This document shows, piece by piece, positions 34,799 to 62,256 of a stretch of 64,000 bases of DNA. This stretch comes from Dendrobates tinctorius (lineage: Eukaryota). The stretch's first letter is position 1. Each line of letters begins with the position of its first letter. The position numbers were made by a program, and so were the translations under genes. The stretch is from NCBI RefSeq assembly GCF_039654945.1, contig NW_027361727.1, positions 20,708,001 to 20,772,000 on the forward strand, in the 5' to 3' direction. Below the pieces are notes generated by a model. The model did not search any database and was not told where the DNA came from. It worked only from the letters and a program-made list of their open reading frames with translations.

Positions 34799-34829
34799 CT
34801 ATCGTCGGACTCCCGAGGGTCCCTTCCAA

Positions 34830-36701: not shown

Positions 36702-36970
36702 AACGGGCAGGATTCTCCGATCGAGTAATTCATACCATGATCCGAGCCAGAAAGCCTTCATCTTCCAAGATTTATTACCGTACTTGGAAGGCCTATTTCA
36801 CTTGGTGTGAGGCCAATGACATCGCGCCCATGTATTTTTCGCTCCCTTCTGTTCTGGCGTTTCTTCAGGCAGGGCTGGATGCGGGGCTTGCCCTCAGTTC
36901 CTTGAAGGGTCAAGTTTCGGCACTGTCCATTTTATTTCAGAAGACGTTGGCCTCCCGCCCTCAGGTCAAG

Positions 36971-40700: not shown

Positions 40701-40870
40701 TGTAGCTCAACTTCAGTGGTAACCGTGGTGATGAGTCCAGGCAGAGGTTTGCCATCGACGGAGGTGATAGCTCGCGGATTTCTTAAGACGACCACGGGAA
40801 TCTGGAGTTTGTCCACCTCTTCCTGGCGGATGAAGTTGCCTGCTGCGCCCGAGTCCACATACGCTTCCAC
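37469..40870 (-). pseudogene. Chromovirus pol (protease, RT, RNase H, integrase, chromodomain) in four ORF pieces
   Basis: ORF track pieces 40382-40870, 40106-40327, 38165-40084 and 37469-38158. Chromodomain FEVKDILAMKRVKGKTLFLIDWKGFGPEERSWEPRENI. Confidence 0.92.
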
Positions 40871-42001
40871 AGAGCCACGCCCCCGACCTGTAATAAGCAG
40901 AGCTGAAAGAGTAAGTGGAAGAGAGGGGGTCTGATCACCTAGGGGGCCCTCTCCTACCTGGCCTAGGCGGATGCGTTTCCCGGTCTCTCAGGACAAGTGC
41001 GTACGAAGTGATTGGCCCCTCCACAATATAAACAGAGTCCATTAGTCATCCTCTCCTTGCGCCGTTGTTCGGACAGCTTGATGCGATCCACCTGCATAGG
41101 CTCAGGAGCGGAGTTACTAGAGGGAGCAACAGCGCACGGAATGGGGGCTTGGTATAACCTAAAGGGCCTCCTCTCCCTGGCTGACTCTCTAGCGCGTTCC
41201 TGAAAACGCAGATCAATACGAGTAGCTAGAGAGATGAGATCTTCCAGGGTGGTTGGGGAGTCACGCCCGGCCAACTCATCCTTGATCTTACTAGAAAGAC
41301 CTCTCCAAAAGGCACCTACAAGGGCTTCATTATTCCACCCTAGCTCCGAGGACAGGGTCCGGAAACGGATGGCGTATTGCCCTACCGTCAGGGATCCCTG
41401 GCGAAGGTTAAAGAGGGCCTCCGTAGTGGAAGCAAGGCGCCCGGGTTCATCAAATACCTTGCGAAATGTCTCCAAAAAACTCTGGATACTGGTGACCACC
41501 GGGTCATCCCTCTCCCATTAGGGATTCACCCAAGCCAGCGCCTCTCCCTCAAGATGGGACACTATAAAGGCCACCTTAGCGCGGTCCGTGGGATATTGTT
41601 GGGGCAGGAGTTCAAAGTGCAGTCTGCACTGGTTTAAAAATCCCCTACACAACTTCGGGTCCCCACTATACCTGGGCGGTTTTCCAAGGCGGAGAGGAGG
41701 AGCTGAGACAGCGTCCCGCGGTTGGGTAGAGACGGCCGCAGAGGACTGTAGAGCAAGCAGTCGATCATCCACGGACGCCATGTACCCCAGAATGTGAGAT
41801 TGAGCGTCGCGCTGCTGCGCGAGCTCCTGCTGGAGACTGGCTAAGAGGGGGGCGTGCCCAGAGTCAGTGGTTTGCAGGGTGGAAAGCCGGGTGTCCATGG
41901 ATTTCATGAAGGACATAATCCGGGTCTGATTTTCCCTTAAAAACAGCAGTTCCTTTTGAGTGGCAGCCGTGGCACCGGCGGGGTCCATGGCCTGATGATA
42001 C

Positions 42002-42826
42002 TGTGACGTTTTTAGGTAAAAAAGCTACGTCGGAGAGTGGACCCTCTGGATCGCGGATCCGGAGCCCCCGGGCCGAGCACTCCAGGGGAAGACCGACCCC
42101 TATACAGGGATCGTTTGGGGCAGGACCACAGGGCACGGAAGCGCAACAGCCGGAACCAAGAGGGACGGCTCCACGGACAAAAAGGACTAGGGAGAAGGAT
42201 GGCTTAGATACGGACCCTGGACTGACGGACAGAGGAATGTAACACAGGGCACGACAGGGAGGCAGAGCACGGACAAGAGGAACTACAGAGGCATGTAACA
42301 CAGGCAAGGCAGGGAGAGAGCATGGACAAGAGGAACTACTGAGGCAAGGAACACTGGCAAGGCAGGGAGAGAGCATGGACAAGAGGAACTACTGAGGCAA
42401 GGAACACTGGGCACGGCAGGGAGGCAGTGAGACAGGGAGTGGACAATAGGAACTACAGAGGACTGTAACACTGGGCAAGGCAGGGAGGCAGAGAGACAGG
42501 GAGTGGACAATAGAAACTACAGAGGACTGTAGCGGCCAGAGGGTGCAGGAGACTACACGATCATCAGGCGTCCTCCTTACAGCGAGGACGCCTGAAGTAT
42601 CCTAACACCCGGAAGTGCGTCCCCCTGTCCTGCCCCTCAGCGCCGCCCACCGCTGGAGGGAGAGAGCGGGAGGGGGCGTGCGCGCGACAGGGAGCGGGTG
42701 CCAGGAGCCGCTGTGAGGAGGATCGCAGGACGGGCGCGCGCCTGGACGGGGGCGCGCAGGTAAGAGGAAGCTGCGGCGTGCGCTGCTGCGCGAGGGACAT
42801 CGGTGGGCATAGCCGCCGATGTCACA
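42002..42826 (-). repeat. 5' LTR of the chromovirus
   Basis: Near-identical to 36971-37715 but 80 bp longer (extra repeat units). Followed on the minus strand by the PBS and the gag ATG at 41988. Confidence 0.95.
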
Positions 42827-43625
42827 TCAAGACCTTTCTTCAGGGCGTGGCCCACACGGCTCCTCCGTACCGAGCGCCCGTGGATCCTTGGGATCTTAAT
42901 CTGGTTCTTGAGGTTCTGCAAGGTCCTCCTTTTGAACCTCTCAGGGATGTTTCCCTTTCTCTCCTTTCTTGGAAGGTGGCTTTTCTGGTGGCGATCACTT
43001 CCATCCGGCGCGTCGGAATTGGCGGCTCTTTCTTGCCGCTCTCCCTTTTTGGTACTTCACCAGGACAAGGTAGTTCTGCGGCCTCCGCCCTCTTTCCTTC
43101 CGAAGGTGGTGTCCTCGTTTCACCTCAATGAGGACATTGTTCTGCCATCCTTCTGTCCGAGTCCAACTCATCCTCGGGAGCGGTCCTTGAACAAGCTGGA
43201 CCTGGTCAGGGCGATGAGAGTCTATCTATCTAGGACGACTTCCTTGCGAAAGACAGAGTCTCTCTTCATCATTCCAGATGGGGCGCGGAAAGGTCACCCA
43301 GCTTCAAAGGCCACTATTGCTCGCTGGATCAGATCGGCAATTTTGGAGGCCTACTGAGTTAAGCATCGAGTGGCTCCTCCGGGGATCAGAGCGCACTCTA
43401 CCCGGGCAGTGGGTGCCTCCGGGGCGGTACGCCACAGAGCTTCCGCGCTGCAGCTTTGCAAAGCTGCAACCTGGTCATCGGTTCACACGTTTGTGAAATT
43501 CTACAAAGTCCACACCTACGCTTCGGCGGATGCCAGCCTAGGTAGAAGTATTGTGCAGGCTGCGGTGGTGAGTCCACTGGCCTGATGGAAGTTTGTTTCC
43601 CACCCCAGGGAGTGCTTTGGGACGT

Positions 43626-43725
43626 CCCATGGTCTCTGTGTCCCCCAATAAGGCGAACGAGAAAACAGGATTTTTGGGTTGCTTACCGTAAAATCTGTTT
43701 CTCGGAGCCTTCATTGGGGGACACA
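43626..43725 (+). repeat. DIRS internal complementary region (ICR)
   Basis: The first half (..cccccaataaggcgaacgagaaa) is complementary to the left terminus and the second half (acaggatttt...gcttaccgtaaaatctgtttctcggagcc..) to the right terminus. Confidence 0.92.
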
Positions 43726-44567
43726 TCACCCTCCCATGTTCTACAACTCCTGTTCTTACTTTGGTTGTTTGGTTACAGTTGAGTTGTTTGTTCAGTTTTC
43801 GATCTATTCTGTCACTTCTACTGCTTTCTCACTAACTGAGGAATTCCCTGCCGGTCGGTGGGGTGTACACTGCGGAGGAGGAGCTAACCTTTTTTGTGCA
43901 TAGTGTCAGCCTCCTAGTGGCAGCAGCATACACCCATGGTCTCTGTGTCCCCCAATGAAGGCTCCGAGAAACAGATTTTACGGTAAGCAACCAAAAAATC
44001 CTGTTTTTGACCGCTCTGTGATCCTCATATAAATAATGGAAATGCATGTGTTTTTATTTTTTATTACTATTTCACCATATTTTAAACTACATTTCATCCC
44101 CTAAAATAAGAATGCCTGGTATGGCCGAGGAAAGAAAGATAAGGTTCTGTTTCATGGAAGAGGAGGAAATAGAGATGTAAAAAAAAATAAATTCTGGTCA
44201 TGGTGTGAAGAGGTTAAAGCAAGATGTGTCAATACTGTGATTCCACAAAAATTGCTGTGAAAAAAAAAAAAAAGCTTTGAGCCCAGTGTGTGAATGGGCC
44301 CTTATTGTCAGCCAGAATCCTGATGATGTGCTCATTTGTGTCATGTGATTGGTCCCAGCCAGTCAACAGCTAGGAAGAGAGTCGTGACAAGCACAGTGGT
44401 CACATGATGCATTGGACAGCTGATGATTGGCTGACAAGGATCACGTGATATTACTGCTAGGGGCTTTTCGGTTGCATGGTGCACAGTGGCAGGTTCTGCA
44501 CCGGAGCTCTGTTTTCTGCTGCTGGTGGACTCCCTCTCCTGCAGCCACCGGGAGGCGAGTTTACACT

Positions 44568-44822
44568 TCGCAGGTGAAGGTTGTAGTGGGGAGTGGCAGC
44601 CTTTGGGAGCTGCAGCACTGATTGGTTGATCAGGGCAGTGAAGGCTGTGCATTTAGGAGCGCGCTCAGTTCTTGAGGCAGGCTTGGAAGGCGTTCATTCA
44701 GGAATGCGCATTTCTACCTCTTGGCGCGCATTCAGGAGCGCGCATTTCTATCTCTTGGCGCGCATTCAGGAGTGCACATTTCTACCTCTTGGCGCGCATT
44801 CAGGAGCGCGCATTTCTGCCTC
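44568..44822 (-). repeat. Diverged inverted copy of the TTC17 upstream segment 58598-58765, with a 32-bp unit locally expanded to about 4 copies
   Basis: The reverse complement reads gaggcagaaatgcgcgctcctgaatgcgcgc...gcctgcctcaagaactgagcgcgctcctaaatgcacagccttcactgccctgatcaaccaatcagtgctgcagctcccaaagg...ctacaaccttcacctgcga, colinear with 58598-58765. Confidence 0.85.
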
Positions 44823-45425
44823 TCCACCGTTTGCCACTCTGCCGTATGATGATCCGTATTGTACCTGTAGTAAGCTGTTGCCTTTCTTCCCAGGTGCTGC
44901 GTCTCCTGGAAGGTGTGGTTTTGCCAGAGCTGCTGATTCAATTAGCCACATTGGCCATCTCGGAGACTGCGGATGACCTGAAAAGTCAGGTAATGCTATG
45001 TACAAGCTCTCGTGTCCTTCTCTATGTATCTATGATATTTTTTGGTGAGTGACCAGATGTCTCCTGATTGTAGGCGACTTTGAGGACTCGTATCTTCAAG
45101 TATCACCTGGATTTGGGACACAGCCAGTTGTACGACGCTCTTGCGCATATTTCTGATCGCAGTAGGTGAGACTGAGGTCTGACAGCTCATGTTGTGGGGC
45201 GGAGGTGTGTACGTTGTGCCTGAGCCTTAGACCCCAGCATTTGCTCCATACATGTTCAAATGGAGGATGGAAGCATCTCCTTTGCGTGTCAGGCCCCGAT
45301 CATGAGCCGCTCCGTACACCCGCTCCTGGCCTGTAGTGTACATTCACCTCAATGGTTGGGAATGTATTAAAGGCACTGCAGGAAATAGCAATGGGCAGAA
45401 ACATCACAGTGACCCCACTTGTTAA

Positions 45426-46381
45426 AGTGAACCTGTCACGTCGTTTTGGCCCTGTATGCTGCGGCATTCTATAATGCTGTAGATAAGCCCCAGATCTAAC
45501 CTGAAATAGAAGAAAAACAAGTTTTATTATACTCACCCTGGGGCGGTCCGGTCCGATGGGTGTCTCAGGTCTGGGTCCGGCGCCTCCCATCTTCATGCGA
45601 TGTCATCATCCTCCTTGCTTCGTACAAATGACAGAAAAAACTGACGGCACATCCTAGTCTGAACAGGTGCATACCATAAAAAACAGCTTACATATCAAAA
45701 TAAGGAAATGGTTGCACTCAATTGCATTAAGGCATGTCAAATATATGAAATGTGAATATCATAATGGCTTTTGAAATTTAGAAAAAACATATGAGATACT
45801 TAGCACAAAATTTGGCCAAAAGATGTGAGCCCATTCACCAACGTCAAGGTGATCTCATTGAACGGGTCCCTCTTCTCACTACCTTATGTGAACTACTGGC
45901 TAATAACAAGATAAAGCATATATTTATAGGAAAAGACATTATGCTATTCACATTTCATATATTTCATATTTGATATGCCTCCTTGCTTCGTGTCACGGCT
46001 CCTACGCAGGCATATTTCTTTGCCCTATTGAGGGCAGAGCAGAGTACTGCAGTGCGCAGGCGCTGGGCCTCTCTGACTTTTCCCGGGGCCTGCACACTGC
46101 AGTACTCTGCTCTGCCCTCAATAGGGCAAAGAAGTACGCCTGCGCAGGAGCCGTGACACGAAGCAAGGAGGAGGACGTCATCGCATGAAGATGGGAGGCA
46201 GTGGACCCGGACCTGCGATGCCCATGGGACCGGACCGCCCCCGGGGGAGTATAATAAAGCTTGTTTTTCTTCTCATTCAGGTTAGATCGGGGGCTTATCT
46301 ACAGCATTACAGAATACTGTAGATAAGCCCTGAAAGGCAGTGGCTGCATCTTACAGGGCCAAAACGATGTGACAGGTTCCC
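45426..46381. mobile_element. Palindromic Kolobok/T2-like MITE carrying a secondary insertion (45624-45977)
   Basis: TTAA|AGTGAACCTGTCAC...GTGACAGGTTCCC; shares the gctgtagataagcccc..tatactcacc arms with the 60763-61255 element. Confidence 0.8.
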
Positions 46382-48886
46382 GATAACCCTCACTTAGCCA
46401 GAGTAGGTGCCCAGTTACACGCTGCGGTCAGGAGCGCTGGAATATTAGGGTCTGGTTGGTTCCTCATCCCACGTCCTCCCGTTTTGCAGACAGCTGGATT
46501 GCCTTCAGCAATCAGGAACTTGTGGAATTCCCTTACGTGAATTTACAGAGTGAGGTGGTCGTCACCCGGCCGGATCCATCATCTTCTTACCGAGCCAGCT
46601 GGTATATCATTGCTGTGTCTCCCTCAGGTTTTGAGCATCATTGAAGCTCGGGCTCGAGCCGTGGATCTGCTGACCCATAATACTACAAGCTCCTGTATGC
46701 TTTCCATATTCATCGGCACAACTATCGGAAAGGTATCGGGGGGTTTTACTTTTCTGATCTTAGCTCTAGTAAGAGATTGTATTAGAAATTCTGGAGCCGC
46801 TGATTTTAGGACCCTACATTCCTCCTGTGCGTTATGTGAAGCCTCTCCGCTTTACCTGGTCCAGCGCGGAATCTCCACTGCTGCTCTTGGTGTATTGTCT
46901 GCCACGCTAACATCACGTTGACACCGCTGCAGACAATCAGTGTGCTAAGTTGCGGGCATGAGCCACTCTGATCATCTGTACTTATGATTGGCTCCACATT
47001 GCAGCCATTTAGTAGAGAAGTTTTTAGTTTGTCTTTGCACACAGAGGGGAGGCACACTCGGGGGTCAGGTAGTTATCCGTCGTATTTGGGATTGTCCCCT
47101 CTAGTGATCTCCATTTCTCTTGTGATTTCCATCTCTGCTGAATGTCATTGTCACCTTCCTCAGCCGGCACCGTGATGTTTGAGTACGGGATGTGTCTTGG
47201 CAGAGAGGTCCGAACTCTTAGAGGTCTTCAGAAGCCAGTGAATGCACACCTGGCGTCTCTGAACCCTCTGCAGCTTATACGGCCCCAATACGCCAGGATT
47301 GTGCAGCCTGCGTCGGGGGCAGTGGGAAAGAGATTTATACTTACAGGGGATTTCCTGCCTAGGGGTGGATTCTCATCTCAGGCGTTCACGGGAATATCTG
47401 TCAGTAAGCACAAGTGTATGCCATTTATTATTATAGCGCCATTTTTTATGATAGCACCATTTATTGCATTACGCTGTAATACGCCATTTTCCAAACTCGT
47501 CATTAAGAGTCACAGATCCGGCGCAGCACAGCCATATCTGTAGCTTCAACCCTTACACTGATATTGGGGTCCAAGCCGTGAACGATCACTGTCTATGAGC
47601 TGGTCGTGCAATGTCATTTCTGTAAGTGGATGAGCTCCGGCCGATATGTCTGTAACTCTGAACACGTGACATATTCCCATCTGTGACTGAGATAAGAAAG
47701 CCCCTTTAATTTACTTAGAGACCCTACATAACCAGAGCAATTTATTTTGCATGATCCAGATTGATAAACTTCTCCTTTTAGAAACTTCTGTTATAAATTT
47801 GTACTGGCGCACCCTGGTGTTCTGTGGGACCCTATGCTCGGTGCTGGTGATCACACGTGCCCCGTGTGTACATGGGCAGAGGAGTGATTCCTGCAGACAG
47901 GGACGCTGCAAAAAAGTGGACGTTCTGATAGGGATTCAACCAAACACAATGGTGCGCCGTAACAAGAAACGTAACTTCTAGCCACCGGTAAATAAAAAAA
48001 TGTTTGCAAGATGAACAGAGAAAATAAAAGTAATTTTCAGCAAATCCATTTACAGGGGTCGTCCAGGGTTAAAAAATATGGCTGCTGTATTAGAAACAGC
48101 GCCACCCTTGTTCGTTGTGTCTGTCCGTGGTATGGCAGCACAGCGTTATTGACTAATGGGGCTTCTTTGCAGTACGAGACAACTTATGGTCTCGGGGCGG
48201 TGTGAGTGAAAGCAGCAACGTAGTAAAAAGCAGCGATGTAACTGGTCACTTCAAGGAGAGAAAAAAGGGGACTCGCTTATCAATGAGGGTTAATTAACAA
48301 AAAAGGTTTAATTCCATAAATCCATTTAAGTCATGGATTGGTTCTACCAGTGTTTTATATAGACGCCTTCAAGGATCTGTTCACAGCTGCAGTAAATGGC
48401 CGGCTCTTCCTGTGATTTAACTCTTGACGATACGATGCATTTTCCTTTATTTTAAGTAGGAGCGTCTCCGAAAAGCAACCACGAAGGCGAGTCCTTGTCC
48501 CTTCCCGGTAAGTGTGTTCTCCGGTTCTCACAAACTCTCTGGTCGTTCTCTGTCACATCGCTAATGGCCGTCCTGCATTTACCAGGTGGAAGTCAGGTGG
48601 AGATTCTGGAGCTGTGGGATTTGAAGAAGGAATTTGTCCTGTCCCGGACACGGCTGACCTTGGCTCGGCATGATAATAATGTGGCCACAATAGCCGGTAA
48701 GGATCCATCTCATCAGACAGTATAATAAATGTGCAGAGGAGGCCGAGGACTCGGAGACGTAATCGGCCTTTATGAAACTGAAGGGCAGGAATAAAGGTGC
48801 AAATTCAGGAGAACGAATATCTGCTCCTGGACTACAGTCCTCATCATTTCATGGGGTTATCCCTCCTGTATTAGCTACAACACACA

Positions 48887-50430
48887 GCAGCCTCCGCTCT
48901 ATGGCACCGGCCCTATCTGTCCATTACACGTCACTTTTCCTCCAGCAACCTCCGCTCTATGGGGCCGACCCCGTCCATCCATTACACGTCACATTTCCTC
49001 CAGCAACCTCCGCTCTATGGGGCTGACCCTGTCTGTCCATTACACGTCATATTTCATCCAGCAACCTCCACTCTATGGGGCCGACCCCGTCCGTCCATGT
49101 CACATTTCTTCCAGCAGCCGCCGCTCTATGGGGCAGACCCTGTCCGTCCATTACATGTCACATTTCTTCCAGCAGCCTCCGCTCTATGGCTCTGACCCTG
49201 TCCCTCCATTACACGTCACATTTCCTCCAGCAGCCTCCGCTCTATGGCTCTGACCCTGTCCCTCCATTACACGTCACATTTCCTCCAGCAGCCTCCGCTC
49301 TATGGGGCCGACCCTGTCCGTCCATTACACGTCACATTTCCTCCAGCAACCTCCACTCTATGGGGCCGACCCCGTCCGTCCATTACACGTCACATTTCTT
49401 CCAGCAGCCTCCGCTCTATGGGGCCGACCCTGTCCGTCCATTACACGTCACATTTCCTCCAGCAACCTCCGCTCTATGGGGCCGACCCTGTCCGTCCATT
49501 ACACGTCACATTTCCTCCAGCAACCTCCGCTCTATGGGGCCGACCCTGTCTGTTCATTACACGTCACATTTCCTACAGCAGCCTCCGCTCTATGGGGCCG
49601 ACCCCGTCCGTCCATTACGCATCACATTTCTTCCAGCAACCTCCGCTCTATGGGGCTGACCCCGTCCGTCCATTACGCGTCACATTTCCTCCAGCAGCCT
49701 CCGCTCTATGGGGCCGACCCCGTCCGTCCATTACGCGTCACATTTCCTCCAGCAGCCTCCGCTCTATGGGGCCGACCCCGTCCGTCCATTACGCGTCACA
49801 TTTCCTCCAGCAACCTCCGCTCTATGGGGCCGACCCCGTCCGTCCATTACACGTCACATTTCCTCCAGCAGCCTCCGCTCTATGGGGCCGACCCCGTCCG
49901 TCCATTACGCGTCACATTTCCTCCTGCAGCCTCCGCTCTATGGGGCCGACCCCGTCCGTCCATTACGCATCACATTTCCTCCAGCAGCCTCCTCTCTATG
50001 GGGCCGACCCCGTCCGTCCATTACGCGTCACATTTCCTCCAGCAGCCTCCGCTCTATGGGGCCGACCCCGTCCGTCCATTACGCGTCACATTTCCTCCAG
50101 CAGCCTCCGCTCTATGGGGCCGACCCCGTCCGTCCATTACGCGTCACATTTCCTCCAGCAACCTCCGCTCTATGGGGCCGACCCCGTCCGTCCATTACAC
50201 GTCACATTTCCTCCAGCAACCTCCGCTCTATGGGGCCGACCCCGTCCGTCCATTACGCGTCACATTTCCTCCAGCAACCTCCGCTCTATGGGGCCGACCC
50301 CGTCCGTCCATTACGCGTCACATTTCCTCCAGCAGCCTCCGCTCTATGGGGCCGACTCCGTCCGTCCATTACGCGTCACATTTCCTCCAGCAGCCTCCGC
50401 TCTATGGCTCTGACCCCGTCCTTCCATTAT
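48887..50430 (+). repeat. 58-bp minisatellite, about 26 copies
   Basis: Unit CAGCAGCCTCCGCTCTATGGGGCCGACCCCGTCCGTCCATTACGCGTCACATTTCCTC. Confidence 0.97.
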
Positions 50431-51931
50431 GAAGGTCAGCAGTCTGGAATCCGGCATCAGACAGAGTTTGGAGACTCCAGATTGTTGAATTGTATCACAC
50501 AGCAGAAAAACTCTTTGTGGTCCATTGTCCCATATAACACATACATACATTATCTACATGAGGCACAATTGTTAAAGGGGTCGTACAGAATTTGGAAAAC
50601 ATTCTCTTTGGAGCTGAGCTGTAATACCTGACACAACCTGTAGACTAAGGTGGCACTGTTTTTAAAGGAAAGCTGCCATGATTTTTAATCTTTTCCATCC
50701 TGTATACTTCTCACCAGTGGCCTCTGTCCGCCTTGTCTCCTTTGGTTTGGCTGCCGTATTCCCCCATCGATCACCTTCTGCAAGCGCTGGAAGAGAATAA
50801 CAGTCTGCTAAACCGAGAGGTAAGAGGCGCAGTCACCGTCACACATGTGTGTGGTGTTTGGGGAGCTTGGTATATGCTCCGATTATAGGACTTTTCCCCC
50901 ATTAGTCGCTGTACATTCTGCCGCCTTCCTTACCGGATGCCACGATAGGCCCCATTCTAAGTCTGTGCTGCCTGGTGCTACTGGGATGATTGACATGTAA
51001 GGATGAGAACCGGAAAAGCCAAAGCTTGTCCTCCGCATGTGCCTGGACTCCCTGACCGTTAATGGCGAGAATTCACAACTCATGACCGTGGTGACTAATG
51101 GTGATGTCATTCATGGTGACGTAATGCCACACTCACAAACTGTGAGGGATTAGAGCCATGGCAGCCGGGCTCAGACCATGTGTGCACCATTAATGTTTTC
51201 CTCCATTTCCTCTACAGCTGCCGGAGAAGCTCAGTGACAAACTTGACTACTACTTTCAGAAGTTGGGAGACTCCACGCCGCATCTGCTCAGCCAATGGAG
51301 AAGCTAGGGCCGCTCTGTGCTCCATGGTTTTCCCCTTTTGTATCTGTATTTAGTCATTTTTGTTCAATAAAATGTAATATTTTCTATGTTTTTGCAATCT
51401 GGAGTCGCTGGTTTTTCGGTAATGGGCCGTGTTCTCAGTGTTAGATAAGTTACATCAAGTTTATGGCTTATATTAATTAAACGGCTAGCAGACTCCTCCC
51501 CTCCCACTAAGCCCTGCCCACTTTTTAGAACTGTGTCATAAAGGTGGGTCCAGCTGGCAGAGAGTAAGTAATGGCATCTTGTAGCTGCTTGCAAGCAGTG
51601 AATTGAAACATCCCTGTTCTTGCATGAACACAACTGCCACAATATAAACACGAGCGGCTCGTGGTCCTCGTCCTCACGGGTCTCTTGAGTCCAGATGTCA
51701 TCAGTACGGCCGTCGATGTTGTGCTGAGCTGCTGCAGCAGCGTTGGAGGGGCTGCCATGGTGGGCATGAGCTTTCATCCCTTGAGCTCTTCTCTTTTTAA
51801 AGAGGTTGTCCAGGACTGTGTCTGTGACGGTCTCTCCTTAGAATAGGTCATCTGTGTGTGATCAGTGGGGGGTGCGACACTGGCAACTCCGCCTATCAGT
51901 TGTTGACCGGAACTTGTCAGTCCCTGCGCTG

Positions 51932-54900
51932 CACAGCTCCGCCGACAGACCTGCAGTACCCGACCGTGGACACAGCTCCACCAACAGACCTGCAGTACCC
52001 GACCGTGAACACAGCTCCACCGACAAACCTGCAGTACCCGACCGTGGACACAGCTCCACCGACAAACCTGCAGTACCCGACTGTGAACACAGCTCCACCA
52101 ACAGACCTGCAGTACCCGACCGTGGACACAGCTCCACCAACAGACCTGCAGTACCCGACCGTGGACACAGCTCCACCGACAAACCTGCAGTACCCGACTG
52201 TGAACACAGCTCCACCAACAGACCTGCAGTACCCGACCGTGGACACAGCTCCACCGACAGACCTGCAGTACCCGACCGTGGACACAGCTCCACCAACAGA
52301 CCTGCAGTACCCAACCGTGAACACAGCTCCACCAACAGACCTGCAGTACCCGACCGTGGACACAGCTCCACCGACAGACCTGCAGTACCCGACCGTGGAC
52401 ACAGCTCCACCGACAGACCTGCAGTACCCGACCGTGGACATAGCTCCACCGACAGACCTGCAGTACCCGACCATGGACAATGCTCTGCCGACAGACCTGC
52501 AATACCCGACCTTGGACACAGCTCCGCCGACAGACCTGCAGTACCCGACCGTGGACACAGCTCCGCCGACAGACGTGCAGTGCCCGACAATGGACACAGC
52601 TTCGCCGACAGATGTGCAGTACCCGACCGAGGACACTGCTCCGCTGACAGACCTGCAGTACCCGACCGAGGACACTGCTCCGCTGACAGACCTGCAGTAC
52701 CCGACCGTGGACACAGCTCCGCGGACAGACCTGCAGTACCCGACCTTGGACACAGCTCCACCAACAGACCTGCAGTACCCGACCGTGGACACAGCTCCGC
52801 CGACAAATCTGCAGTACCCGACCGTGGACACAGCTCTGCCGACAAACCTGCAGTACCCGACCGTGGACACAGCTCCGCGGACAGACCTGCAGTACCCGAC
52901 CTTGGACACAGCTCCGCTGACAGACCTGCAGTACCCGTCTGTGGACACAGCTATGCCGACAGACGTGCAGTACCTGACCGAGGGCACAGCTCCGCCGACA
53001 GACGTGCAGTACCTGACCGAGGGCACAGCTCCGCCGACAGACCTGCAGTACCCGACCGAGGACACAGCTCCACCGACAGACCTGCAGTACCCGACCTTGG
53101 ACACAGCTCCGCTGACAGACCTGCAGTACCCGACTGTGGACACAGCTCTGCCGACAGACGTGCAGTACCTGACCGAGGGCACAGCTCCGCCGACAGACGT
53201 GCAGTACCTGACCGAGGGCACAGCTCCGCCGACAGACCTGCAGTACCCGACCGAGGACACAGCTCCGCTGACAGACCTGCAGTACCTGACCGAGGACACA
53301 GCTCCACCGACAGACCTGCAGTACCCGACCGAGGACACAGCTCCGCTGACAGACCTGCAGTACCCGACCGTGAACACAGCTCCACCGACAAACCTGCAGT
53401 ACCCGACCGTGGATACAGCTCTGCCGACAGACGTGCAGTACCTGACCGAGGGCACAGCTCCGCCGACAGACCTGCAGTACCCGACCGAGGACACAGCTCC
53501 ACCGACAAACCTGCAGTACCTGACCGAGGACACAGCTCCACCGACAGACCTGCAGTACCCGACCGTGGACACAGCTCCACCGACAGACCTGCAGTACCCG
53601 ACCGAGGACACAGCTCCACCAACAGACCTGAAGTACCCGAACGTGGAAACAGCTCCACCAACAGACCTGCAGTACCCGACCGTGGACACAGCTCCACCAA
53701 CAGACCTGCAGTACCCGACCGTGAACACAGCTCCACCAACAGACCTGCAGTACCCGACCGTGGACACAGCTCCACCAACAGACCTGCAGTACCCGACCGT
53801 GGACACAGCTCCACCGACAGACCTGCAGTACCTGACCGAGGGCACAGCTCCGCCGACAGACCTGCAGTACCCGACCGAGGACACAGCTCCGCTGACAGAC
53901 CTGCAGTACCTGACCGAGGACACAGCTCCACCGACAGACCTGCAGTACCCGACCGAGGACACAGCTCCGCTGACAGACCTGCAGTACCCGACCGTGAACA
54001 CAGCTCCACCGACAAACCTGCAGTACCCGACCGTGAACACAGCTCCACCAACAGACCTGCAGTACCCGACCGTGGACACAGCTCCACCAACAGACGTGCA
54101 GTACCTGACCGAGGGCACAGCTCCGCCGACAGACGTGCAGTACCTGACCGAGGGCACAGCTCCGCCGACAGACCTGCAGTACCCGACCGAGGACACAGCT
54201 CCGCTGACAGACCTGCAGTACCTGACCGAGGACACAGCTCCACCGACAGACCTGCAGTACCCGACCGAGGACACTGCTCCGCTGACAGACCTGCAGTACC
54301 CGACCGAGGACACAGCTCCGCTGACAGACCTGCAGTACCCGACCGTGAACACAGCTCCACCGACAAACCTGCAGTACCCGACCGTGGATACAGCTCTGCC
54401 GACAGACGTGCAGTACCTGACCGAGGGCACAGCTCCGCCGACAGACCTGCAGTACCCGACCGAGGACACAGCTCCACCGACAAACCTGCAGTACCTGACC
54501 GAGGACACAGCTCCACCGACAGACCTGCAGTACCCGACCGTGGACACAGCTCCACCGACAGACCTGCAGTACCCGACCGAGGACACAGCTCCACCAACAG
54601 ACCTGAAGTACCCGAACGTGGAAACAGCTCCACCAACAGACCTGCAGTACCCGACCGTGGACACAGCTCCACCAACAGACCTGCAGTACCCGACCGTGAA
54701 CACAGCTCCACCAACAGACCTGCAGTACCCGACCGTGAACACAGCTCCACCAACAGACCTGCAGTACCCGACCGTGGACACAGCTCCACCAACAGACCTG
54801 CAGTACCCGACCGTGGACACAGCTCCACCGACAGATGTGCAGTATCTGACTGAGGACACAGCTCCGCTGACAAACCTGCAGTACCTGACCGAGGACATAG

Positions 54901-54945
54901 CTCCACCGACAAACCTGCAGTACCCGACCATGGACAATGCTCCGG
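51932..54945 (+). repeat. 39-bp minisatellite, about 77 copies
   Basis: Unit GACACAGCTCCACCGACAGACCTGCAGTACCCGACCGTG with interspersed variants. Confidence 0.97.
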
Positions 54946-55056
54946 TGACGCCGCTGTGCTGTGGGTGTCGGTGACTGAGCAGCTCCGGCCAACACCAGGG
55001 AAGAGCTAACAGCCAAGATGGCGGGTGTAACCAGTGTTAAAGATGGGTTATCAATG

Positions 55057-55320
55057 TTAACCCCTTAATGACCGGGCCACTTTTGACCTTAATGACCAAG
55101 CCAATTTTTACATTTCTGACCACTGTCCCTTTTGAGGTTATGGCTCTGGAACGCTTCAATGGATCCTGCTGATTATGACATTGTTTTTCGTGACATATTG
55201 TGCTTAATGATAGTGGTAAAATTTCTTTGGTATGCGTTTATTTCTGAAACAAAACAAGAAATTTGCCAAAAAAATTTTGAAATTTGGCAATTTTCAAACT
55301 TTGATTTTTTTTTTTTTTTG
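55057..55320 (+). mobile_element. Probable piggyBac-like terminal fragment
   Basis: TTAA|CCCCTTAATGACC start with a repeated CCTTAATGACC subterminal motif. Confidence 0.45.
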
Positions 55321-55467
55321 TGCCCATACATCTGTAAAAACCGACCCGAATCACGTTCCCTGGAGATTTTCTAACGCTGGGGGCGCTACCCACTTATTTC
55401 TTAGCGCCGTTAAAGTCCTGGACAACCGCTTTAAAGGGAAGGTGAGGAGCCGTGGCATCATAGTGTC

Positions 55468-58088
55468 ACCCCCACACTGTGCACCTCCATCCCACCCACT
55501 GCCCCCACACTGTGTACCTCCATCCCACCCACTGCCCCCACACTGTGCACCTCCATCCCACCCCCACACTGTGCACCTCCTTCCCACCCACTGCCCCCAC
55601 ACTGTGCACCTCCATCCCACCCACTGCCCCCACACTGTGCACCTCCATCCCACCCACTGCCCCCACACTGTGCACCTCCATCCCACCCACTGCCCCACAC
55701 TGCACCTCCTTCCCACCCACTGCCCCCACCCTGTGCACCTCCATCCCACCCACTGCCCCCACACTGTGCACCTCCTTCCCACCCACTGCCCCCACACTGT
55801 GCACCTCCATCCCACCCACTGCCCCCACACTGTGCACCTCCTTCCCACCCACTGTGCACCTCCATCCCACCCACTGCCCCCACACTGTGCACCTCCATCC
55901 CACCCACTGCCCCCACACTGTGCACCTCCATCCCACCCACTGCCCCCACACTGTGCACCTCCTTCCCACCCACTGTCCCCACACTGTGCACCTCCATCCC
56001 ACCCACTGCCCCCACACTGTGCACCTCCTTCCCACCCACTGCCCCCACACTGTGCACCTCCATCCCACCCACTGCCCCCACACTGTGCACCTCCTTCCCA
56101 CCCACTGCCCCCACACTGTGCACCTCCATCCCACCCACTGCCCCCACACTGTGCACCTCCATCCCACCCACTGCTCCCACACTGTGCACCTCCATCCCAC
56201 CCACTGCCCCCACACTGTGCACCTCCTTCCCACCCACTGCCCCCACACTGTGCACCTCCATCCCACCCACTGCCCCCACACTGTGCACCTCCATCCCACC
56301 CACTGCCCCCACACTGTGCACCTCCTTCCCACCCACTGCCCCCACACTGTGCACCTCCTTCCCACCCACTGCCCCCACACTGTGCACCTCCTTCCCACCC
56401 ACTGCCCCCACACTGTGCACCTCCATCCCACCCACTGCCCCCACACTGTGCACCTCCATCCCACCCACTGCCCCCACACTGTGCACCTCCTTCCCACCCA
56501 CTGCCCCCACACTGTGCACCTCCTTCCCACCCACTGCCCCCACACTGTGCACCTCCATCCCACCCACTGCCCCCACACTGTGCACCTCCATCCCACCCAC
56601 TGCCCCCACACTGTGCACCTCCTTCCCACCCACTGCCCCCACACTGTGCACCTCCTTCCCACCCACTGCCCCCACACTGTGCACCTCCTTCCCACCCACT
56701 GCCCCCACACTGTGCACCTCCATCCCACCCACTGCCCCCACACTGTGCACCTCCATCCCACCCACTGCCCCCACACTGTGCACCTCCTTCCCACCCACTG
56801 CCCCCACACTGTGCACCTCCATCCCACCCACTGCCCCCACACTGTGCACCTCCTTCCCACCCACTGCCCCCACACTGTGCACCTCCATCCCACCCACTGC
56901 CCCCACACTGTGCACCTCCATCCCACCCACTGCTCCCACACTGTGCACCTCCATCCCACCCACTGCCCCCACACTGTGCACCTCCTTCCCACCCACTGCC
57001 CCCACACTGTGCACCTCCATCCCACCCACTGCCCCCACACTGTGCACCTCCATCCCACCCACTGCCCCCACACTGTGCACCTCCTTCCCACCCACTGCCC
57101 CCACACTGTGCACCTCCTTCCCACCCACTGCCCCCACACTGTGCACCTCCTTCCCACCCACTGCCCCCACACTGTGCACCTCCATCCCACCCACTGCCCC
57201 CACACTGTGCACCTCCATCCCACCCACTGCCCCCACACTGTGCACCTCCTTCCCACCCACTGCCCCCACACTGTGCACCTCCTTCCCACCCACTGCCCCC
57301 ACACTGTGCACCTCCATCCCACCCACTGCCCCCACACTGTGCACCTCCATCCCACCCACTGCCCCCACACTGTGCACCTCCTTCCCACCCACTGCCCCCA
57401 CACTGTGCACCTCCTTCCCACCCACTGCCCCCACACTGTGCACCTCCTTCCCACCCACTGCCCCCACACTGTGCACCTCCATCCCACCCACTGCCCCCAC
57501 ACTGTGCACCTCCATCCCACCCACTGCCCCCACACTGTGCACCTCCTTCCCACCCACTGCCCCCACACTGTGCACCTCCTTCCCACCCACTGCCCCCACA
57601 CTGTGCACCTCCATCCCACCCACTGCCCCCACACTGTGCACCTCCATCCCACCCACTGCCCTCACACTGTGCACCTCCTTCCCACCCACTGCCCCCACAC
57701 TGTGCACCTCCTTCCCACCCACTGCCCCCACACTGTGCACCTCCTTCCCACCCACTGCCCCCACACTGTGCACCTCCATCCCACCCACTGCCCCCACACT
57801 GTGCACCTCCATCCCACCCACTGCCCCCACACTGTGCACCTCCTTCCCACCCACTGCCCCCACACTGTGCACCTCCTTCCCACCCACTGCCCCCACACTG
57901 TGCACCTCCATCCCACCCACTGCCCCCACACTGTGCACCTCCTTCCCACCCACTGCCCCCACACTGTGCACCTCCTTCCCACCCACTGCCCCCACACTGT
58001 GCACCTCCATCCCACCCACTGCCCCCACACTGTGCACCTCCATCCCACCCACTGCCCCCACACTGTGCACCTCCTTCCCACCCACTGC
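55468..58088 (+). repeat. 33-bp C-rich minisatellite, about 79 copies
   Basis: Unit CCCACACTGTGCACCTCC(A/T)TCCCACCCACTGCC. Confidence 0.97.
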
Positions 58089-58597
58089 TGTCCCCTTTCT
58101 GACTGGCGTTTCCGAGGTGAGTGGAGCCTGTGGCAGTCATCTGCCCCCTAATTACTTGTGGAGGCTCCCCGGTGACGCTGCTGACTGACGTGTCACACAT
58201 GAAGCAGTGTTCGTGTCCCAGCGACATGGATGTTCGCCGGGATAAACGTCTGCACACGGCGGCTCCTGCCTGTGACGCTGTGGAGCCGCCATTCTGTAGA
58301 GCCCTCCCGACCGCGCATATCAACTTCTACATTGATTCTGTGCGCAGTATTTTCGCAGCATGGGGGCGAGATTTCCTGCACTCTCACTTTGCTGGCTACT
58401 GAATTTGCCGTCGAATTTCCATGCAGACGAGCCACACAGAAATCACTTTTTGTCTCCCTCAGGCAACACCACACCTATTTTTTCAAAGTGTCTGAAATAA
58501 AAACTGTATTTAAAATCTTTTATTTTTAAATTGTAAAACATTTTCATGTTACATGTGCCAACCATTATGACTGTGACATGCCTTATATTATATACAT

Positions 58598-58870
58598 GAG
58601 GCAGAAATGCGCGCTCCTGAATGCGCGCTCCTGAATGCGCGCCTGCCTCAGGAACTGAGCGCGCTCCTAATTGCACCGCCTTCACTGCCCTGATGACCCA
58701 ATCAGCGCTGCAGCTCCCAAAGACTGCCCCTCCCCGGACACACCCTCTACAACCTTCCCCTGCGATTTACCGCTGTCTGTGGAGTTTTGCCTCTAGAAAG
58801 ATGGCGGCTACTTTGCTTCCTTTTCCGATGTGCGCGGCGGAAGTGATTTCAGCAGGAAAGATGGCGGAGA
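58598..58870 (+). promoter_or_regulatory. TTC17 proximal promoter
   Basis: CpG-rich, with TGCGCGC repeats, CCAAT (about 58698), YY1-type AAGATGGCGG at both ATGs (58798, 58858) and ETS-type GCGGAAGT (about 58837). Confidence 0.6.
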
Positions 58871-59040
58871 GCAGGAGCGGGCCGCAGTGCCCCCCCGACA
58901 ACGGAGCGCGGGCGGCCGCCGTCAGGAGCCCTCAGGGCTGGGCCTATGTCCTAGGACTTTTCTCTCTGCTCTGTACAGTGGGGCCCTCGGGGGCCACAAC
59001 ACACTGGGTGGTGACTGAGGACGGCAAGATCCAGCAGCAG
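58801..59040 (+). CDS. TTC17: Tetratricopeptide repeat protein 17, first coding exon (start at ATG 58801 or in-frame ATG 58861)
   Basis: Encodes ...WAYVLGLFSLLCTVGPSGATTHWVVTEDGKIQQQ followed by a GTAAC donor at 59041. ATTHWVVTEDGKIQQQ is the conserved TTC17 N-terminal motif, and TTC17 follows API5 in human. Confidence 0.93.
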
Positions 59041-59048
59041 GTAACAGG

Positions 59049-60030
59049 GCGCTGACAGGAGGAGGGAAGGGGGCGCAGCGCGCTGACAGGAGGAGGGAAG
59101 GGGGCGCAGCGCGCTGACAGGAGGAGGGAAGGGGGCGCAGCGCGCTGACAGGAGGAGGGAAGGGGGCGCAGCGCGCTGACAGGAGGAGGGAAGGGGGCGC
59201 AGCGCGCTGACAGGAGGAGGGAAGGGGGCGCAGCGCGCTGACAGGAGGAGGGAAGGGGGCGCAGCGCGCTGACAGGAGGAGGGAAGGGGGCGCAGCGCGC
59301 TGACAGGAGGAGGCAAGGGGGCGCAGCGCGCTGACAGGAGGAGGGAAGGGGGCGCAGCGCGCTGACAGGAGGAGGGAAGGGGGCGCAGCGCGCTGACAGG
59401 AGGAGGGAAGGGGGCGCAGCGCGCTGACAGGAGGAGGGAAGGGGGCGCAGCGCGCTGACAGGAGGAGGGAAGGGGGCGCAGCGCGCTGACAGGAGGAGGG
59501 AAGGGGGCGCAGCGCGCTGACAGGAGGAGGGAAGGGGGCGCAGCGCGCTGACAGGAGGAGGGAAGGGGGCGCAGCGCGCTGACAGGAGGAGGGAAGGGGG
59601 CGCAGCGCGCTGACAGGAGGAGGGAAGGGGGCGCAGCGCGCTGACAGGAGGAGGGAAGGGGGCGCAGCGCGCTGACAGGAGGAGGGAAGGGGGCGCAGCG
59701 CGCTGACAGGAGGAGGGAAGGGGGCGCAGCGCGCTGACAGGAGGAGGGAAGGGGGCGCAGCGCGCTGAGAGGAGGAGGGAAGGGGGCGCAGCGCGCTGAG
59801 AGGAGGCGGGAAGGGGGCGCAGCGCGCTGAGAGGAGGCGGGAAGGGGGCGCAGCGCGCTGAGAGGAGGCGGGAAGGGGGCGCAGCGCGCTGAGAGGAGGC
59901 GGGAAGGGGGCGCAGCGCGCTGAGAGGAGGAGGGAAGGGGGCGCAGCGCGCTGAGAGGAGGAGGGAAGGGGGCGCAGCGCGCTGAGAGGAGGAGGGAAGG
60001 GGGCGCAGCGCGCTGACAGGAGGAGGGGGG
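59049..60030 (+). repeat. 31-bp G-rich CpG minisatellite directly after the TTC17 exon 1 donor, about 32 copies
   Basis: Unit GCGCTGACAGGAGGAGGGAAGGGGGCGCAGC. Confidence 0.97.
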
Positions 60031-61269: not shown

Positions 61270-62256
61270 TATGTACAAGAATGTACCAGTAACTACTATA
61301 ATACTGCTCCCTATGTACAAGAATATAACTACTATAATACTGCCCCCTATGTACAAGAATATAACTACTATAATACTGCTCCCTATGTACAATAATATAA
61401 CTACTATAATACTGCTCCTATGTACAAGAATATTACTACTATAATACTGCCCCTATGTACAAGAATATAACTACTATAATACTGCCCCCTATGTACAAGA
61501 ATATAACTACTATAATACTGCTCCCTATGTACAATAATATAACTACTATAATACTGCCCCCTATGTACAAGAATATAACTACTATAATACTGCCCCCTAT
61601 GTACAAGAATATAACTACTATAATACTGCCCCCTATGTACAAGAATATAACTACTATAATACTGCCCCCTATGTACAAGAATATAACTACTATAATACTG
61701 CCCCCTATGTACAAGAATATAACTACTATAATACTGCCCCCTATGTACAAGAATATAACTACTATAATACTGCCCCCTATGTACAAGAATATAACTACTA
61801 TAATACTGCTCCCTATGTACAAGAATATAACTACTATAATACTGCCCCCTATGTACAAGAATATAACTACTATAATACTGCCCCCTATGTACAAGAATAT
61901 AACTACTATAATACTGCCCCCTATGTACAAGAATATAACTACTATAATACTGCCCCCTATGTACAAGAATATAACTACTATAATACTGCCCCCTATGTAC
62001 AAGAATATAACTACTATAATACTGCCCCCTATGTACAAGAATATAACTACTATAATACTGCCCCCTATGTACAAGAATATAACTACTATAATACTGCCCC
62101 CTATGTACAAGAATATAACTACTATAATACTGCCCCCTATGTACAAGAATATAACTACTATAAAACTGCCTCCTATGTACAAGAATATAACTACTATAAT
62201 ACTGCTCCTACCTATGTACAAGAATATAACTACTATAATACTGCCCCTATGTACAA
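61270..62256 (-). repeat. Same satellite in opposite orientation, homogeneous 39-bp units, in TTC17 intron 1
   Basis: About 25 copies of CCTATGTACAAGAATATAACTACTATAATACTGCCC[C]. Confidence 0.97.

Follow-up and report, generated by a model that had tools for sequence, protein, structure and literature searches.

In the window analysed here (64,000 nucleotides of DNA from the poison frog Dendrobates tinctorius), the last third of NUP160 lies between two inverted copies of a short promoter-like sequence, one of which directly precedes the first exon of TTC17, and this arrangement raises the question of how a gene fragment and a candidate promoter came to stand together at this place. The explanation that we favour, tentatively, is that a promoter-bearing unit that duplicates, and is most likely transposon-like, carries this part of NUP160, and that the block is one of its copies.

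Inverted arms at the ends of the block

The left arm of the block (44568–44723) is the reverse complement of the right arm (58595–58765), with 90% gap-free identity, and is extended to 44822 by a tandem array. The blastn alignment of 44568–44723 with 58765–58595 covers 171 columns with an E value of 1e-35, in a global alignment 139 positions match, with 15 mismatches and 19 columns of gaps (90.3% identity without gaps), and an inverted-repeat search places the arms at 44588–44682 and 58641–58735 (95 nt, 92% complementary), so that the inverted copy reported in the preliminary description is confirmed. The block is thus bounded by terminal inverted repeats of 171–255 bp and 90% identity, with 18 of the outermost 20 nt matching, and neither blastn nor sequence comparison found homology past either arm. 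That the similarity arose by chance or through misassembly, in favour of which one could cite only the general difficulty of assembling a repeat-rich genome, has a negligible probability, being refuted for practical purposes by the E value, by a core 33-mer that occurs twice in the 64-kb window with none expected, and by independent same- and related-species contigs that span the left junction. Since the related-species contig covers 44005–44724, the left outer junction is no assembly artefact of the D. tinctorius genome.

Each arm consists of a core and an array. The left core (44568–44680, + strand) is, by alignment, an inverted copy of 58652–58765 and carries an inverted CCAAT box (ATTGG) near 44620; it is followed by a GC-rich array (44681–44822, + strand) that ends with CTGCCTC. 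The unit of this array, described earlier as 32 bp long and expanded about four times, is present in 3.8 copies as expected, but its length is 34 bp (44695–44823 according to TRF). Each unit matches 58595–58628, and the last one (44792–44822) is identical to it at 31 of 31 positions. In the right arm, the core (58652–58765, − strand), delimited by alignments and motif positions, adjoins a short array of a 14-bp unit in 2.6 copies (58595–58651, − strand), found by repeat search between GAGGCAG and CTGCCTC. This array is predicted to fold into a hairpin of −15.3 kcal/mol (z −3.0; 1 of 200 shuffles equally good). Both arms terminate sharply on the inner side at GAGGCAG/CTGCCTC (58598 and 44816–44822), as had been noted.

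The right arm ends 35 nt before ATG 58801, the in-frame upstream start codon of the first coding exon of TTC17 (58801–59040, + strand, donor at 59041), with its CCAAT box (58698–58702) pointing to that gene; both the box and the distance agree with the preliminary description. By homology, the conserved start of TTC17 is at 58861, and Staurois parvus (P0001) as well as other vertebrate ORFs share MAESRSGP... / ATTHWVVTEDGKIQQQ. The CCAAT boxes and GC-rich repeats of the arms presumably resemble Staf/NRF1-type sites. Three GC-rich repeats, the CCAAT box at 58698, and then the 5′ UTR succeed each other towards TTC17 in what we take to be the layout of a housekeeping promoter, and the homology between the arms stops near the likely TTC17 transcription start. 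These features would suit an extended form, in our estimate unlikely, of an origin suggested earlier: a rearrangement here copied the native promoter of TTC17 in inverted orientation and joined it to the 3′ fragment of NUP160, the divergent activity of the copy expressed the fragment, and the resulting chimera, in our extension, seeded other loci.

As anticipated, the interior of the block contains the AATAAA of the NUP160 fragment (51366–51371) and three minisatellites identified by TRF. The first, with a 58-bp unit in 27 copies (48885–50429), lies inside the fragment at a place where, judged by exon order, several NUP160 exons are absent; the other two have units of 39 bp in 77 copies (51932–54943) and of 33 bp in 80 copies (55469–58088). 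A length of 14.2 kb would be unusually great for a transposon-like unit and counts against that reading, although 7.2 kb is minisatellite. Additionally, intron 2 of the fragment hosts a high-copy fold-back transposon (45421–46387; arms 45459–45623 and 46158–46322, 87%), with a DNA contig depth of 1e4–1e5.

The NUP160 fragment and its RNA

The copied part of NUP160 starts at about residue 963 (Xenopus ~963–1439) and includes introns. Exons E1–E3 match residues 963–1035 of Xenopus/human Nup160 (E 1e-25), E5 matches residues 1095–1152, the E values for the Xenopus and human Nup160 chains are 1e-25 and 2e-21, and a Pfam match to TPR_NUP160_120_M (PF23354) is present. All exons lie on the + strand. 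The spacer that leads to them (44823–44893, + strand) is the 3′ part of the NUP160 intron that precedes the first of the copied exons, and a RefSeq CDS begins in it with an ATG at 44846 that continues unspliced into the exon. The distance from the end of the left arm to the first acceptor is 71 bp, as against the estimate of about 70 bp made previously. Exon E1 (44894–44989, Xenopus Nup160 ~963–995) is placed by homology and by the GT..AG joint 44989>45074 in RNA contigs, and E2 (45074–45165) shows in protein alignment a 3-nt deletion relative to the paralogues and Xenopus. In E3 (46490–46554), a net deletion of 32 nt creates a frameshift: the NUP160 mRNA of a relative has 34 letters between 46510 and 46513, the RefSeq model resorts to a cryptic donor at 46550, and P0029, a paralogue from R. 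imitator, has the exon intact. Exon E4 (46628–46732) contains the RefSeq CDS stop (46632–46634) and, near 46680, a frameshift of 1 nt. Exon E5 (47164–47324, Xenopus 1095–1152), placed by homology and the relative's mRNA, has lost its parental last 12 nt and its donor, the relative's mRNA having 12 letters between 47324 and 48459. Exons E6 (48460–48507) and E7 (48586–48696) follow from the relative's mRNA contig and the sequence, E8 (50718–50819) from protein alignment and the sequence, and the last exon, E9 (51218–51307), carries the NUP160 stop codon ahead of the AATAAA.

With the E3 deletion, the E4 frameshift, the lost E5 donor, and the exons missing at 48885–50429, the full-length intact frame of ~1,400 aa is absent, and the NUP160 copy in the block is a fragment and no functional NUP160. 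Its introns are at parental positions, the relative's mRNA contig skipping 46555–46627, 46733–47163, and 48508–48585, each with GT..AG ends; on this basis, the fragment is an unprocessed DNA-level duplicate, not a retrocopy.

The product of the fragment is identical to RefSeq XP_073434726/7 (P0011), "Nup160-like" from D. tinctorius, whose CDS length of 1789 nt fits 44846–46634. Same-species RNA-like contigs (X6) cover 44061–44272 and 44281–44738 with 0 differences and 44788–44987 also exactly, and they include the E1–E2 joint and leave the introns uncovered. Because these exact contigs splice onward, spliced RNA exists at the locus, and because they cross the whole left arm from 44061, the arm is exonic here. 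The expectation that a divergent promoter would drive a spliced NUP160-derived RNA is thus upheld as regards the RNA, together with its RefSeq model, but not as regards a visible start in the left arm, given the cover of 44061–44738 by contigs that carry no strand or end information. The same crossing of the entire left arm speaks against the derivation of the family from a TTC17 promoter copied at this site. The stretch to the left of the arm (44061–44567), covered by exact RNA-like contigs, is single copy, with a DNA depth of 6–10. Motifs in this flank include TATAAATA at 44028–44035 (+ strand) and AATAAA hexamers at 44065–44060 and 44058–44053 (− strand).

Copy number and the family of Nup160-like copies

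The depth of same-species DNA contigs is 6–10 at 44067–44567 and 342–366 at 44568–44901, a jump of about 40-fold in the bin that starts at 44568 and that, extending to 44734, mixes the core with 45 nt of the array. Across the same boundary, the depth in the related species goes from 9–20 to 248–626, figures equally explained by a multi-copy array alone. By derived arithmetic, the core, array, and spacer stand at about 16–20 in the RNA of a third species, with 44401–44567 at 0. The spacer is multi-copy (7 DNA contigs at 44861), and the depth drops towards the middle of the fragment. We infer that the core, beyond the array alone, belongs to the repeated unit, against which it counts that two ORF searches spanning the core turned up no further copies.

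A raised depth over the module, as well as the same two ends shared by both arms in the manner of discrete-element copies, could also mean that the 170-bp module is a short repeat dispersed on its own, with one copy that happened to lie in the NUP160 intron that became the front of the fragment family and another by chance before TTC17. We regard this variant of the dispersed-repeat proposal as quite improbable: the depth of the module, ~300 by derived arithmetic, equals that of the spacer (247–286), as if the two always travelled together, no target-site duplications were found around either arm alone, blastn detected no arm copy in the 64-kb window besides these two, the ORF searches spanning the core were negative, and the module has no Rfam match.

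Other Nup160-like models are located on four other D. tinctorius scaffolds (P0013; P0017; P0016/19/20; P0018) and in Ranitomeya (P0012/21, P0014, P0015/22, P0023, P0028/47, P0029/48), which amounts, with the present locus, to at least five loci in D. tinctorius, at least five in Ranitomeya variabilis, and at least one in R. imitator. The paralogues share the first NUP160 exon behind the same array and spacer, and the N termini of several of them are the translated left-arm array (HSGARIS, AFRSAH, SAHFY, MEGA/LEGV), with the MEGA/LEGV terminus, at 44683, specific to the first array unit. Because these N termini come from the left-arm array, the junction between the array and NUP160 is family-wide. 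The suggestion that this junction was simply made at the present locus does not hold unless the locus is the founder, since other scaffolds and Ranitomeya have it as well. The Ranitomeya copies P0023 and P0047 exhibit the same damaged E5 end and the same read-through, with intron sequence also shared, and because of this common damage the copies derive from an already broken fragment. The approximately dozen RefSeq "Nup160-like" models in the three poison-frog genomes are broken fragment copies, and studies of gene families or of expression should not treat them as NUP160 paralogues.

The copy in the window retains the ancestral residues AISE and RIFK, lost in four other D. tinctorius paralogues, and the arms have diverged from each other (~10%) about as much as the fragment has from the genomic copy nearest to it (8–10%). 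Both observations would agree with this locus as the founder, but the ancestral residues are also kept in Ranitomeya copies. Moreover, since 44067–44567 is single copy, all secondary copies would have to begin at precisely the outer boundary of the arm.

Two of the paralogues have head-to-head neighbours, an RFT1-like CDS at a distance of 233 bp and RIC1 at 600 bp, a situation similar to that of the right arm beside TTC17. The RFT1-like neighbour is only 211 aa long and may itself be a fragment; annotated copies are biased to expressed ones, and the apparent link with host promoters may be inflated. Such partners would also fit an inversion with staggered breaks, in which a family member once stood head-to-head with TTC17 and shared one module with it, and a 13.8-kb inversion, with staggered breaks to either side of the module, duplicated it in inverted orientation at both ends, the array–spacer junction at 44822/44823 being old and those at 44567/44568 and 58597/58598 new. 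In Drosophila, 17 of 29 inversions have inverted duplicates at their ends, which are 46 bp–1.9 kb long (median 321 bp; Ranz et al. 2007, PMC1885836). The arms (171–255 bp) fit this signature, with a short sequence once at each end of the segment, inverted, and in the same size range; however, the Drosophila sequence is non-repetitive, whereas the one here may be multi-copy. An inversion would account both for the occurrence of the left inner junction throughout the family and for the unrelated AT-rich sequence that follows the right arm, and it would place a break at the foot of a hairpin-forming array. Nevertheless, the spread of the family would require a separate mechanism, a core native to TTC17 predicts only two copies and fits poorly with the depth arithmetic for the same and the third species, and the left outer junction is present in the related species as well, so that no uninverted state was seen. 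We consider such an inversion improbable, to about the same degree as an origin of the family from the TTC17 promoter.

Comparison with mobile elements and duplicated segments

Of the earlier proposals, an element that captured a gene fragment fits best, on account of the multi-locus family copied from a broken fragment, the depth jump in the bin that starts where the arm does, and the adjoining 5′ ends of host genes, although the target-site duplications are unconvincing: the 8-bp flanks TTTACACT and TTTACCGC agree at 5 of 8 positions in register, with p 0.03 that is non-significant after correction for ~80 trials. In such a promoter-bearing unit, the module would comprise a ~115-bp CCAAT-containing core and a hairpin-forming GC-rich array. 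The left arm (44568–44822) would be the module in its proper position ahead of the fragment, at its 5′ end, and the right arm (58595–58765), which directly precedes TTC17 exon 1, would be either the opposite end of the unit or the module present a second time. Transcripts that start in the module or pass through it would contain the copied exons spliced at old NUP160 sites, giving rise to a broken Nup160-like RNA with a 100-aa ORF, and the unit would have been copied from the already damaged fragment, some copies landing head-to-head with host genes. On this reading, the two arms would be the termini of a single element, the family would have spread by transposition, and the module may act as a promoter in either direction. 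If the unit is indeed a mobile captured-fragment element, TTC17 has a repeated element directly upstream, and this sequence in poison frogs is repeat-derived.

Helitrons are known to carry captured gene fragments in Xenopus, one frog family being bounded by minisatellites (PMC12001565), and those of bats carry captured promoters and exons, such as HelibatN3 of vesper bats, which has the NUBPL promoter (PMC4778049). The present family resembles such elements in that part of a host gene, splice sites included, is copied as DNA to many loci and produces new spliced transcripts, with copies just upstream of host transcription starts (PMC4778049). The block differs from Heli1Xen1 of Xenopus laevis and HelibatN3 in that its captured piece comes from the 3′ third of a gene, Helitrons tending to capture 5′ ends, and in having long inverted-repeat ends, absent in Helitron1. 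No CTRR end or Rep/Hel gene was found here, and the copies number tens, not thousands. TC is present at the outer ends of both arms, preceded by A in the right one only, with no 3′ end identified, and apart from this 5′-TC no canonical hAT or Helitron ends were seen at the termini. If mobile, the unit would show clearly that, in a vertebrate, a promoter can move jointly with a gene fragment and insert next to host genes; such a process is already documented in bats and plants.

Pack-MULEs of rice and other pack-type elements have long terminal inverted repeats around an intron-bearing gene fragment, lack a transposase, are expressed, and lie near the 5′ ends of genes. In turn, the long repeats of the block bracket an intron-bearing fragment, without transposase remnants anywhere in the block, and the block is likewise expressed and located near the 5′ end of a gene. 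Unlike pack-type transposons, it has no convincing 8–11-bp target-site duplication, its termini do not resemble hAT or MULE ends, and both ends are seen in one copy only. We can speculate, with more doubt than attaches to a mobile unit in general, that it represents a so far undescribed vertebrate pack-type element, non-autonomous and with long promoter-like terminal repeats, that took up the 3′ third of NUP160 before the split of Dendrobates and Ranitomeya, reached tens of sites, prefers the 5′ ends of housekeeping genes (RFT1-like, RIC1, TTC17), and supplies or shares a bidirectional promoter there.

Core-duplicon families of primates, for example LRRC37, include duplicates that gained new promoters (PMC3371713, PMC6920530). 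They resemble the present family in that a transcribed gene piece spreads as DNA and relies for its expression on promoters that it gains or shares at the new sites, but they extend over tens to hundreds of kb without defined ends, whereas the unit described here seems to begin sharply at 44568.

Inverted arms and the sequence between them

The inverted repeat that the preliminary description had placed at 44568–44822 and 58598–58765 is borne out by blastn, which aligns 44568–44723 to 58765–58595 (E 1e-35). A repeat search gives inverted arms of 95 nt that are 92% complementary (44588–44682 and 58641–58735), and a global alignment of arm against arm contains 139 matches, 15 mismatches, and 19 gap columns, corresponding to 90.3% identity without gaps. 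No third copy of the arm was found by blastn within the 64-kb window, in which a 33-mer of the core occurs twice versus 0 expected. The left arm comprises the core (44568–44680) and a GC-rich array (44681–44822), together referred to here as the module. The repeat unit of the left copy is indeed expanded about four times (×3.8), but it is 34 bp long rather than the 32 bp first reported. Every 34-bp unit matches 58595–58628, with the last one (44792–44822) identical at 31 of 31 positions, and the right copy has a 14-bp unit repeated 2.6 times. Other elements were found as originally outlined: both arms end on their inner side with GAGGCAG/CTGCCTC, the left arm lies 71 bp from the NUP160 acceptor (about 70 in the earlier account), the right arm carries a CCAAT box at 58698–58702, three minisatellites (48885–50429, 51932–54943, and 55469–58088) lie between the arms, and the fragment has its own AATAAA at 51366–51371.

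Past the ends of the arms, no homology was detected except for one 19-nt island (58458–58476), located 122 nt inside the right arm, which matches the start of NUP160 exon E1 (44911–44929) in the same sense at 17 of 19 positions and is oriented to its arm in the way that E1 is to the left one. GVVLPE is encoded in both, and an acceptor-like tttcag stands just before the island. Its E value is 0.017 in a small search, none of 300 shuffles scored as well, and no sequence around it is collinear with the surroundings of E1; it may be a chance match or the last remnant of a second fragment. The region 43900–45500 has no match in Rfam, and an ORF across the left core used as a query gave no matches, while one across the right core matched only relatives of TTC17 exon 1; these matches include GC-rich sequences that may come from amniotes (P0003, P0005, P0007, and P0010).

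The fragment between the arms (exons E1–E9, 44894–51307) is a broken and unprocessed copy of the last third of NUP160. With the exons searched singly, and the RefSeq product as the only spliced protein query, E1–E3 match residues 963–1035 of Xenopus and human Nup160, and E5 matches residues 1095–1152. In a third species (set X8), a NUP160 mRNA contig skips the introns of the fragment, which have GT..AG ends, and has 34 letters in place of the window's 2 at 46511–46512, as well as 12 letters after 47324 that are missing from the window. These losses in E3 and E5, taken together with the skipped introns, a 1-nt frameshift in E4, and the absence of some exons at the 58-bp minisatellite, mark the copy as both unprocessed and broken.

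Intron 2 of the fragment contains a fold-back, MITE-like transposon (45421–46387), which is among the most abundant sequences in all four runs (summed depth 1e4–4e5) and is also present in RNA contigs. Over 46702–48774, covering introns and E4–E7, the same-species DNA contigs (set X1) include a second set at 90–92% identity and about half the depth (2.8–4.2 versus 8–9), which represents either the parental NUP160 or the closest paralogue; the related species has both 97–98% and ~90% versions of this region.

A family of Nup160-like copies

When the ORF 44672–45049 was used as a query in a word search, six short "Nup160-like" proteins were retrieved. One of them (P0011, XP_073434726/7, 100 residues) is the D. 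tinctorius product of this locus, the gene model of which is thus already known in RefSeq. Its N terminus is the spacer between array and fragment (44823–44893), translated from an ATG at 44846, and its path continues through E1, E2, and E3, where a cryptic donor at 46550 is used, to a stop in E4; the CDS span of 1789 nt fits 44846–46634. Other D. tinctorius models are found on four more scaffolds (P0013, P0017, P0016/19/20, and P0018). An exhaustive profile search brought further models from Ranitomeya, with at least five loci on three chromosomes in R. variabilis and at least one in R. imitator, along with many ordinary NUP160 exon ORFs from other vertebrates. A pseudoscorpion protein, P0041, was rejected as a family member, its low-complexity match being spurious.

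The N termini of several paralogues are translated array peptides of the left arm (HSGARIS, AFRSAH, SAHFY), and the N-terminal MEGA of paralogues corresponds to LEGV at 44683, which is peculiar to the first array unit, beside the core. In two Ranitomeya models, P0023 and P0047, the end of E5 is read through into the same downstream sequence as in the window copy; the lost E5 donor is therefore common to all three. The paralogue P0015 matches intron sequence at 50999–51052. The deletion in E3, in turn, is private to the window copy, since E3 is intact in the R. imitator model. The common array leader and E5 defect, set beside the private deletion in E3, show that the junction of array and NUP160 is family-wide and predates the split of Dendrobates and Ranitomeya. 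The family copies thus descend from an already damaged fragment, rather than being repeated duplicates of the functional gene. The sole paper found with the term "Nup160-like" was unrelated to such copies.

Two of the paralogues start close to host genes. A distance of 233 bp separates the start of the P0013 CDS from that of a divergent RFT1-like CDS, which may itself be a fragment, as its product has only 211 residues; no RFT1-like coding sequence was found left of the left arm in the window. For the R. variabilis model P0014, the neighbour is a divergent, full-length RIC1, with 600 bp between the two starts, and in the window the right arm's outer end lies, as noted before, 35 nt from the first ATG of TTC17 (58801). 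No called neighbours were present within 10 kb at three other loci. Distances this short would seldom be expected of randomly chosen sites when the genome has ~6.4 Gb (PMC11152451), although the annotated copies are a sample biased to expressed ones.

Copy number of the module and means of spread

The depth of X1 contigs is 6–10 over 44067–44567, rises to 342 over 44568–44734 and 366 over 44735–44901, and drops again to 121, 66, and 103 as far as the fold-back transposon; beyond 47.1 kb it is 9–17. In the related-species DNA (set X5), the corresponding depths are 9–20, then 248 and 626. At spacer position 44861, seven X1 and six X5 contigs, all unlike the window, have a summed depth of 247–354. 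Because the bin starting at 44568 contains both core (122 nt) and array (45 nt), what can be concluded from it is limited. On the assumption of even array depth, the core is estimated at ~296 in X1, near the value for the spacer, and at ~16 in RNA of the third species, the same as array and spacer there, whereas the same assumption gives ~0 in X5. The evidence for a multi-copy core, favoured in two of these three data sets, is thus suggestive. An X5 contig spans 44005–44724 at ~96% identity, so that the left outer junction predates the split from that related species.

In both DNA runs there are contigs (depth 62 and 234) in which 44906 is linked back to 44795 through one additional A. A tandem repeat of ~113 bp, made up of the final array unit, the spacer, and 13 nt from the start of E1, would seem to exist elsewhere in the genome; the joint could also be an alignment effect.

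To explain the family, a means of spread at the DNA level is needed, one that has a sharply defined 5′ boundary. We tentatively consider, at somewhat less than even confidence, that the vehicle might be a non-autonomous transposon-like unit, bounded in the window by the two inverted arms, as the preliminary description had proposed among its readings. Such a unit suits the inverted arms, the host 5′ ends beside the module, and the retention of end exons with loss of the middle in many paralogues. Against it stand the weak target-site duplication at the outer flanks (five of eight positions match), the absence of a transposase or other domains in the block between the arms, and termini that are not canonical. 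Helitrons are known to capture pieces of genes and promoters in bats (PMC4778049) and Xenopus (PMC12001565); the genome paper (PMC11152451) mentions neither Helitrons nor pseudogenes or gene fragments. The arm pair would be explained equally well locally by a staggered-break inversion that duplicated the module (PMC1885836), a reading favoured by the hairpin located at the break; however, this leaves the spread of the family unexplained, and we regard it as unlikely. Similarly improbable is a founder version of the earlier proposal, in which a rearrangement duplicated the native TTC17 promoter, and the simple form of a third proposal, in which an independent short repeat serves as the promoter of TTC17, is less likely still.

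RNA from the locus and its setting

Set X6, which bears the species label of X1 (the best DNA match to this stretch), was read as a transcriptome because of its 33 Mb of contigs, its GT..AG joints, and the lack of coverage of the fragment's introns. Its contigs are identical to the window over 44061–44272, 44281–44738, and 44788–44987, the last of them continuing over the splice joint 44989>45074. Where letters of E1 and E2 are diagnostic of a copy, this contig (depth 9) has the window's letters, and other contigs (36–52) have those of other copies. Its other 245 letters correspond to E2, E4, and E6 (92 + 105 + 48), and bin depths of 5.72 and 2.61 are exactly those expected if 105 and 48 nt were covered at 9.09 and E3 and E5 not at all; from this arithmetic of length and depth we infer an isoform without the two damaged exons, E3 and E5. 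A spliced NUP160-derived RNA, which had been suggested as a possible product of a duplicated promoter, is thereby shown to exist at this locus by exact contigs with a joint, but RNA extends across the entire left arm and also over the 500 nt before it. With unstranded contigs, two readings of this upstream RNA remain: a + strand start near 44060, with TATAAATA at 44028–44035, or a separate − strand RNA ending at AATAAA hexamers at ~44060.

API5, the coding exons of which extend on the + strand from ~18.06 kb to ~27.3 kb, was rejected as the source of the RNA at 44.06–44.99 kb because its coding sequence ends well before and retroelements occupy 32.3–44.0 kb. A + strand element bearing a reverse transcriptase (32320–44007) has 118-nt inverted ends (32320–32437 and 43834–43951, 94%), and a further inverted pair, of 64 nt, lies at the right end; we would guess that the element is DIRS-like, and no recombinase was detected in it by Pfam. 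Nested within it, on the − strand, is a Ty3/Gypsy element with LTRs at ~36971–37715 and 42002–42826 (96–98%).

The identification of the first coding exon of TTC17 was upheld by homology: MAESRSGP... and ATTHWVVTEDGKIQQQ are found in a protein of Staurois parvus and in ORFs from other vertebrates as well. The conserved start is at 58861, and the ATG at 58801 is upstream and in frame. The motif GAAAGATGGCGG occurs twice in 58796–58866, with the two ATGs 60 nt apart, and only the second copy matches the start of the Staurois protein. A 31-bp GC-rich minisatellite (59045–60027, ×31.7, 99% matches) starts 4 bp past the donor of exon 1. API5 and TTC17 are flanked on both sides by a 35–36-bp satellite containing GTACATAGGGGCAGTATTATAGTAGTTATA, present in four arrays (3722–6260, 8908–9135, 9848–12596, and 61290–62256), the last of which is reversed.
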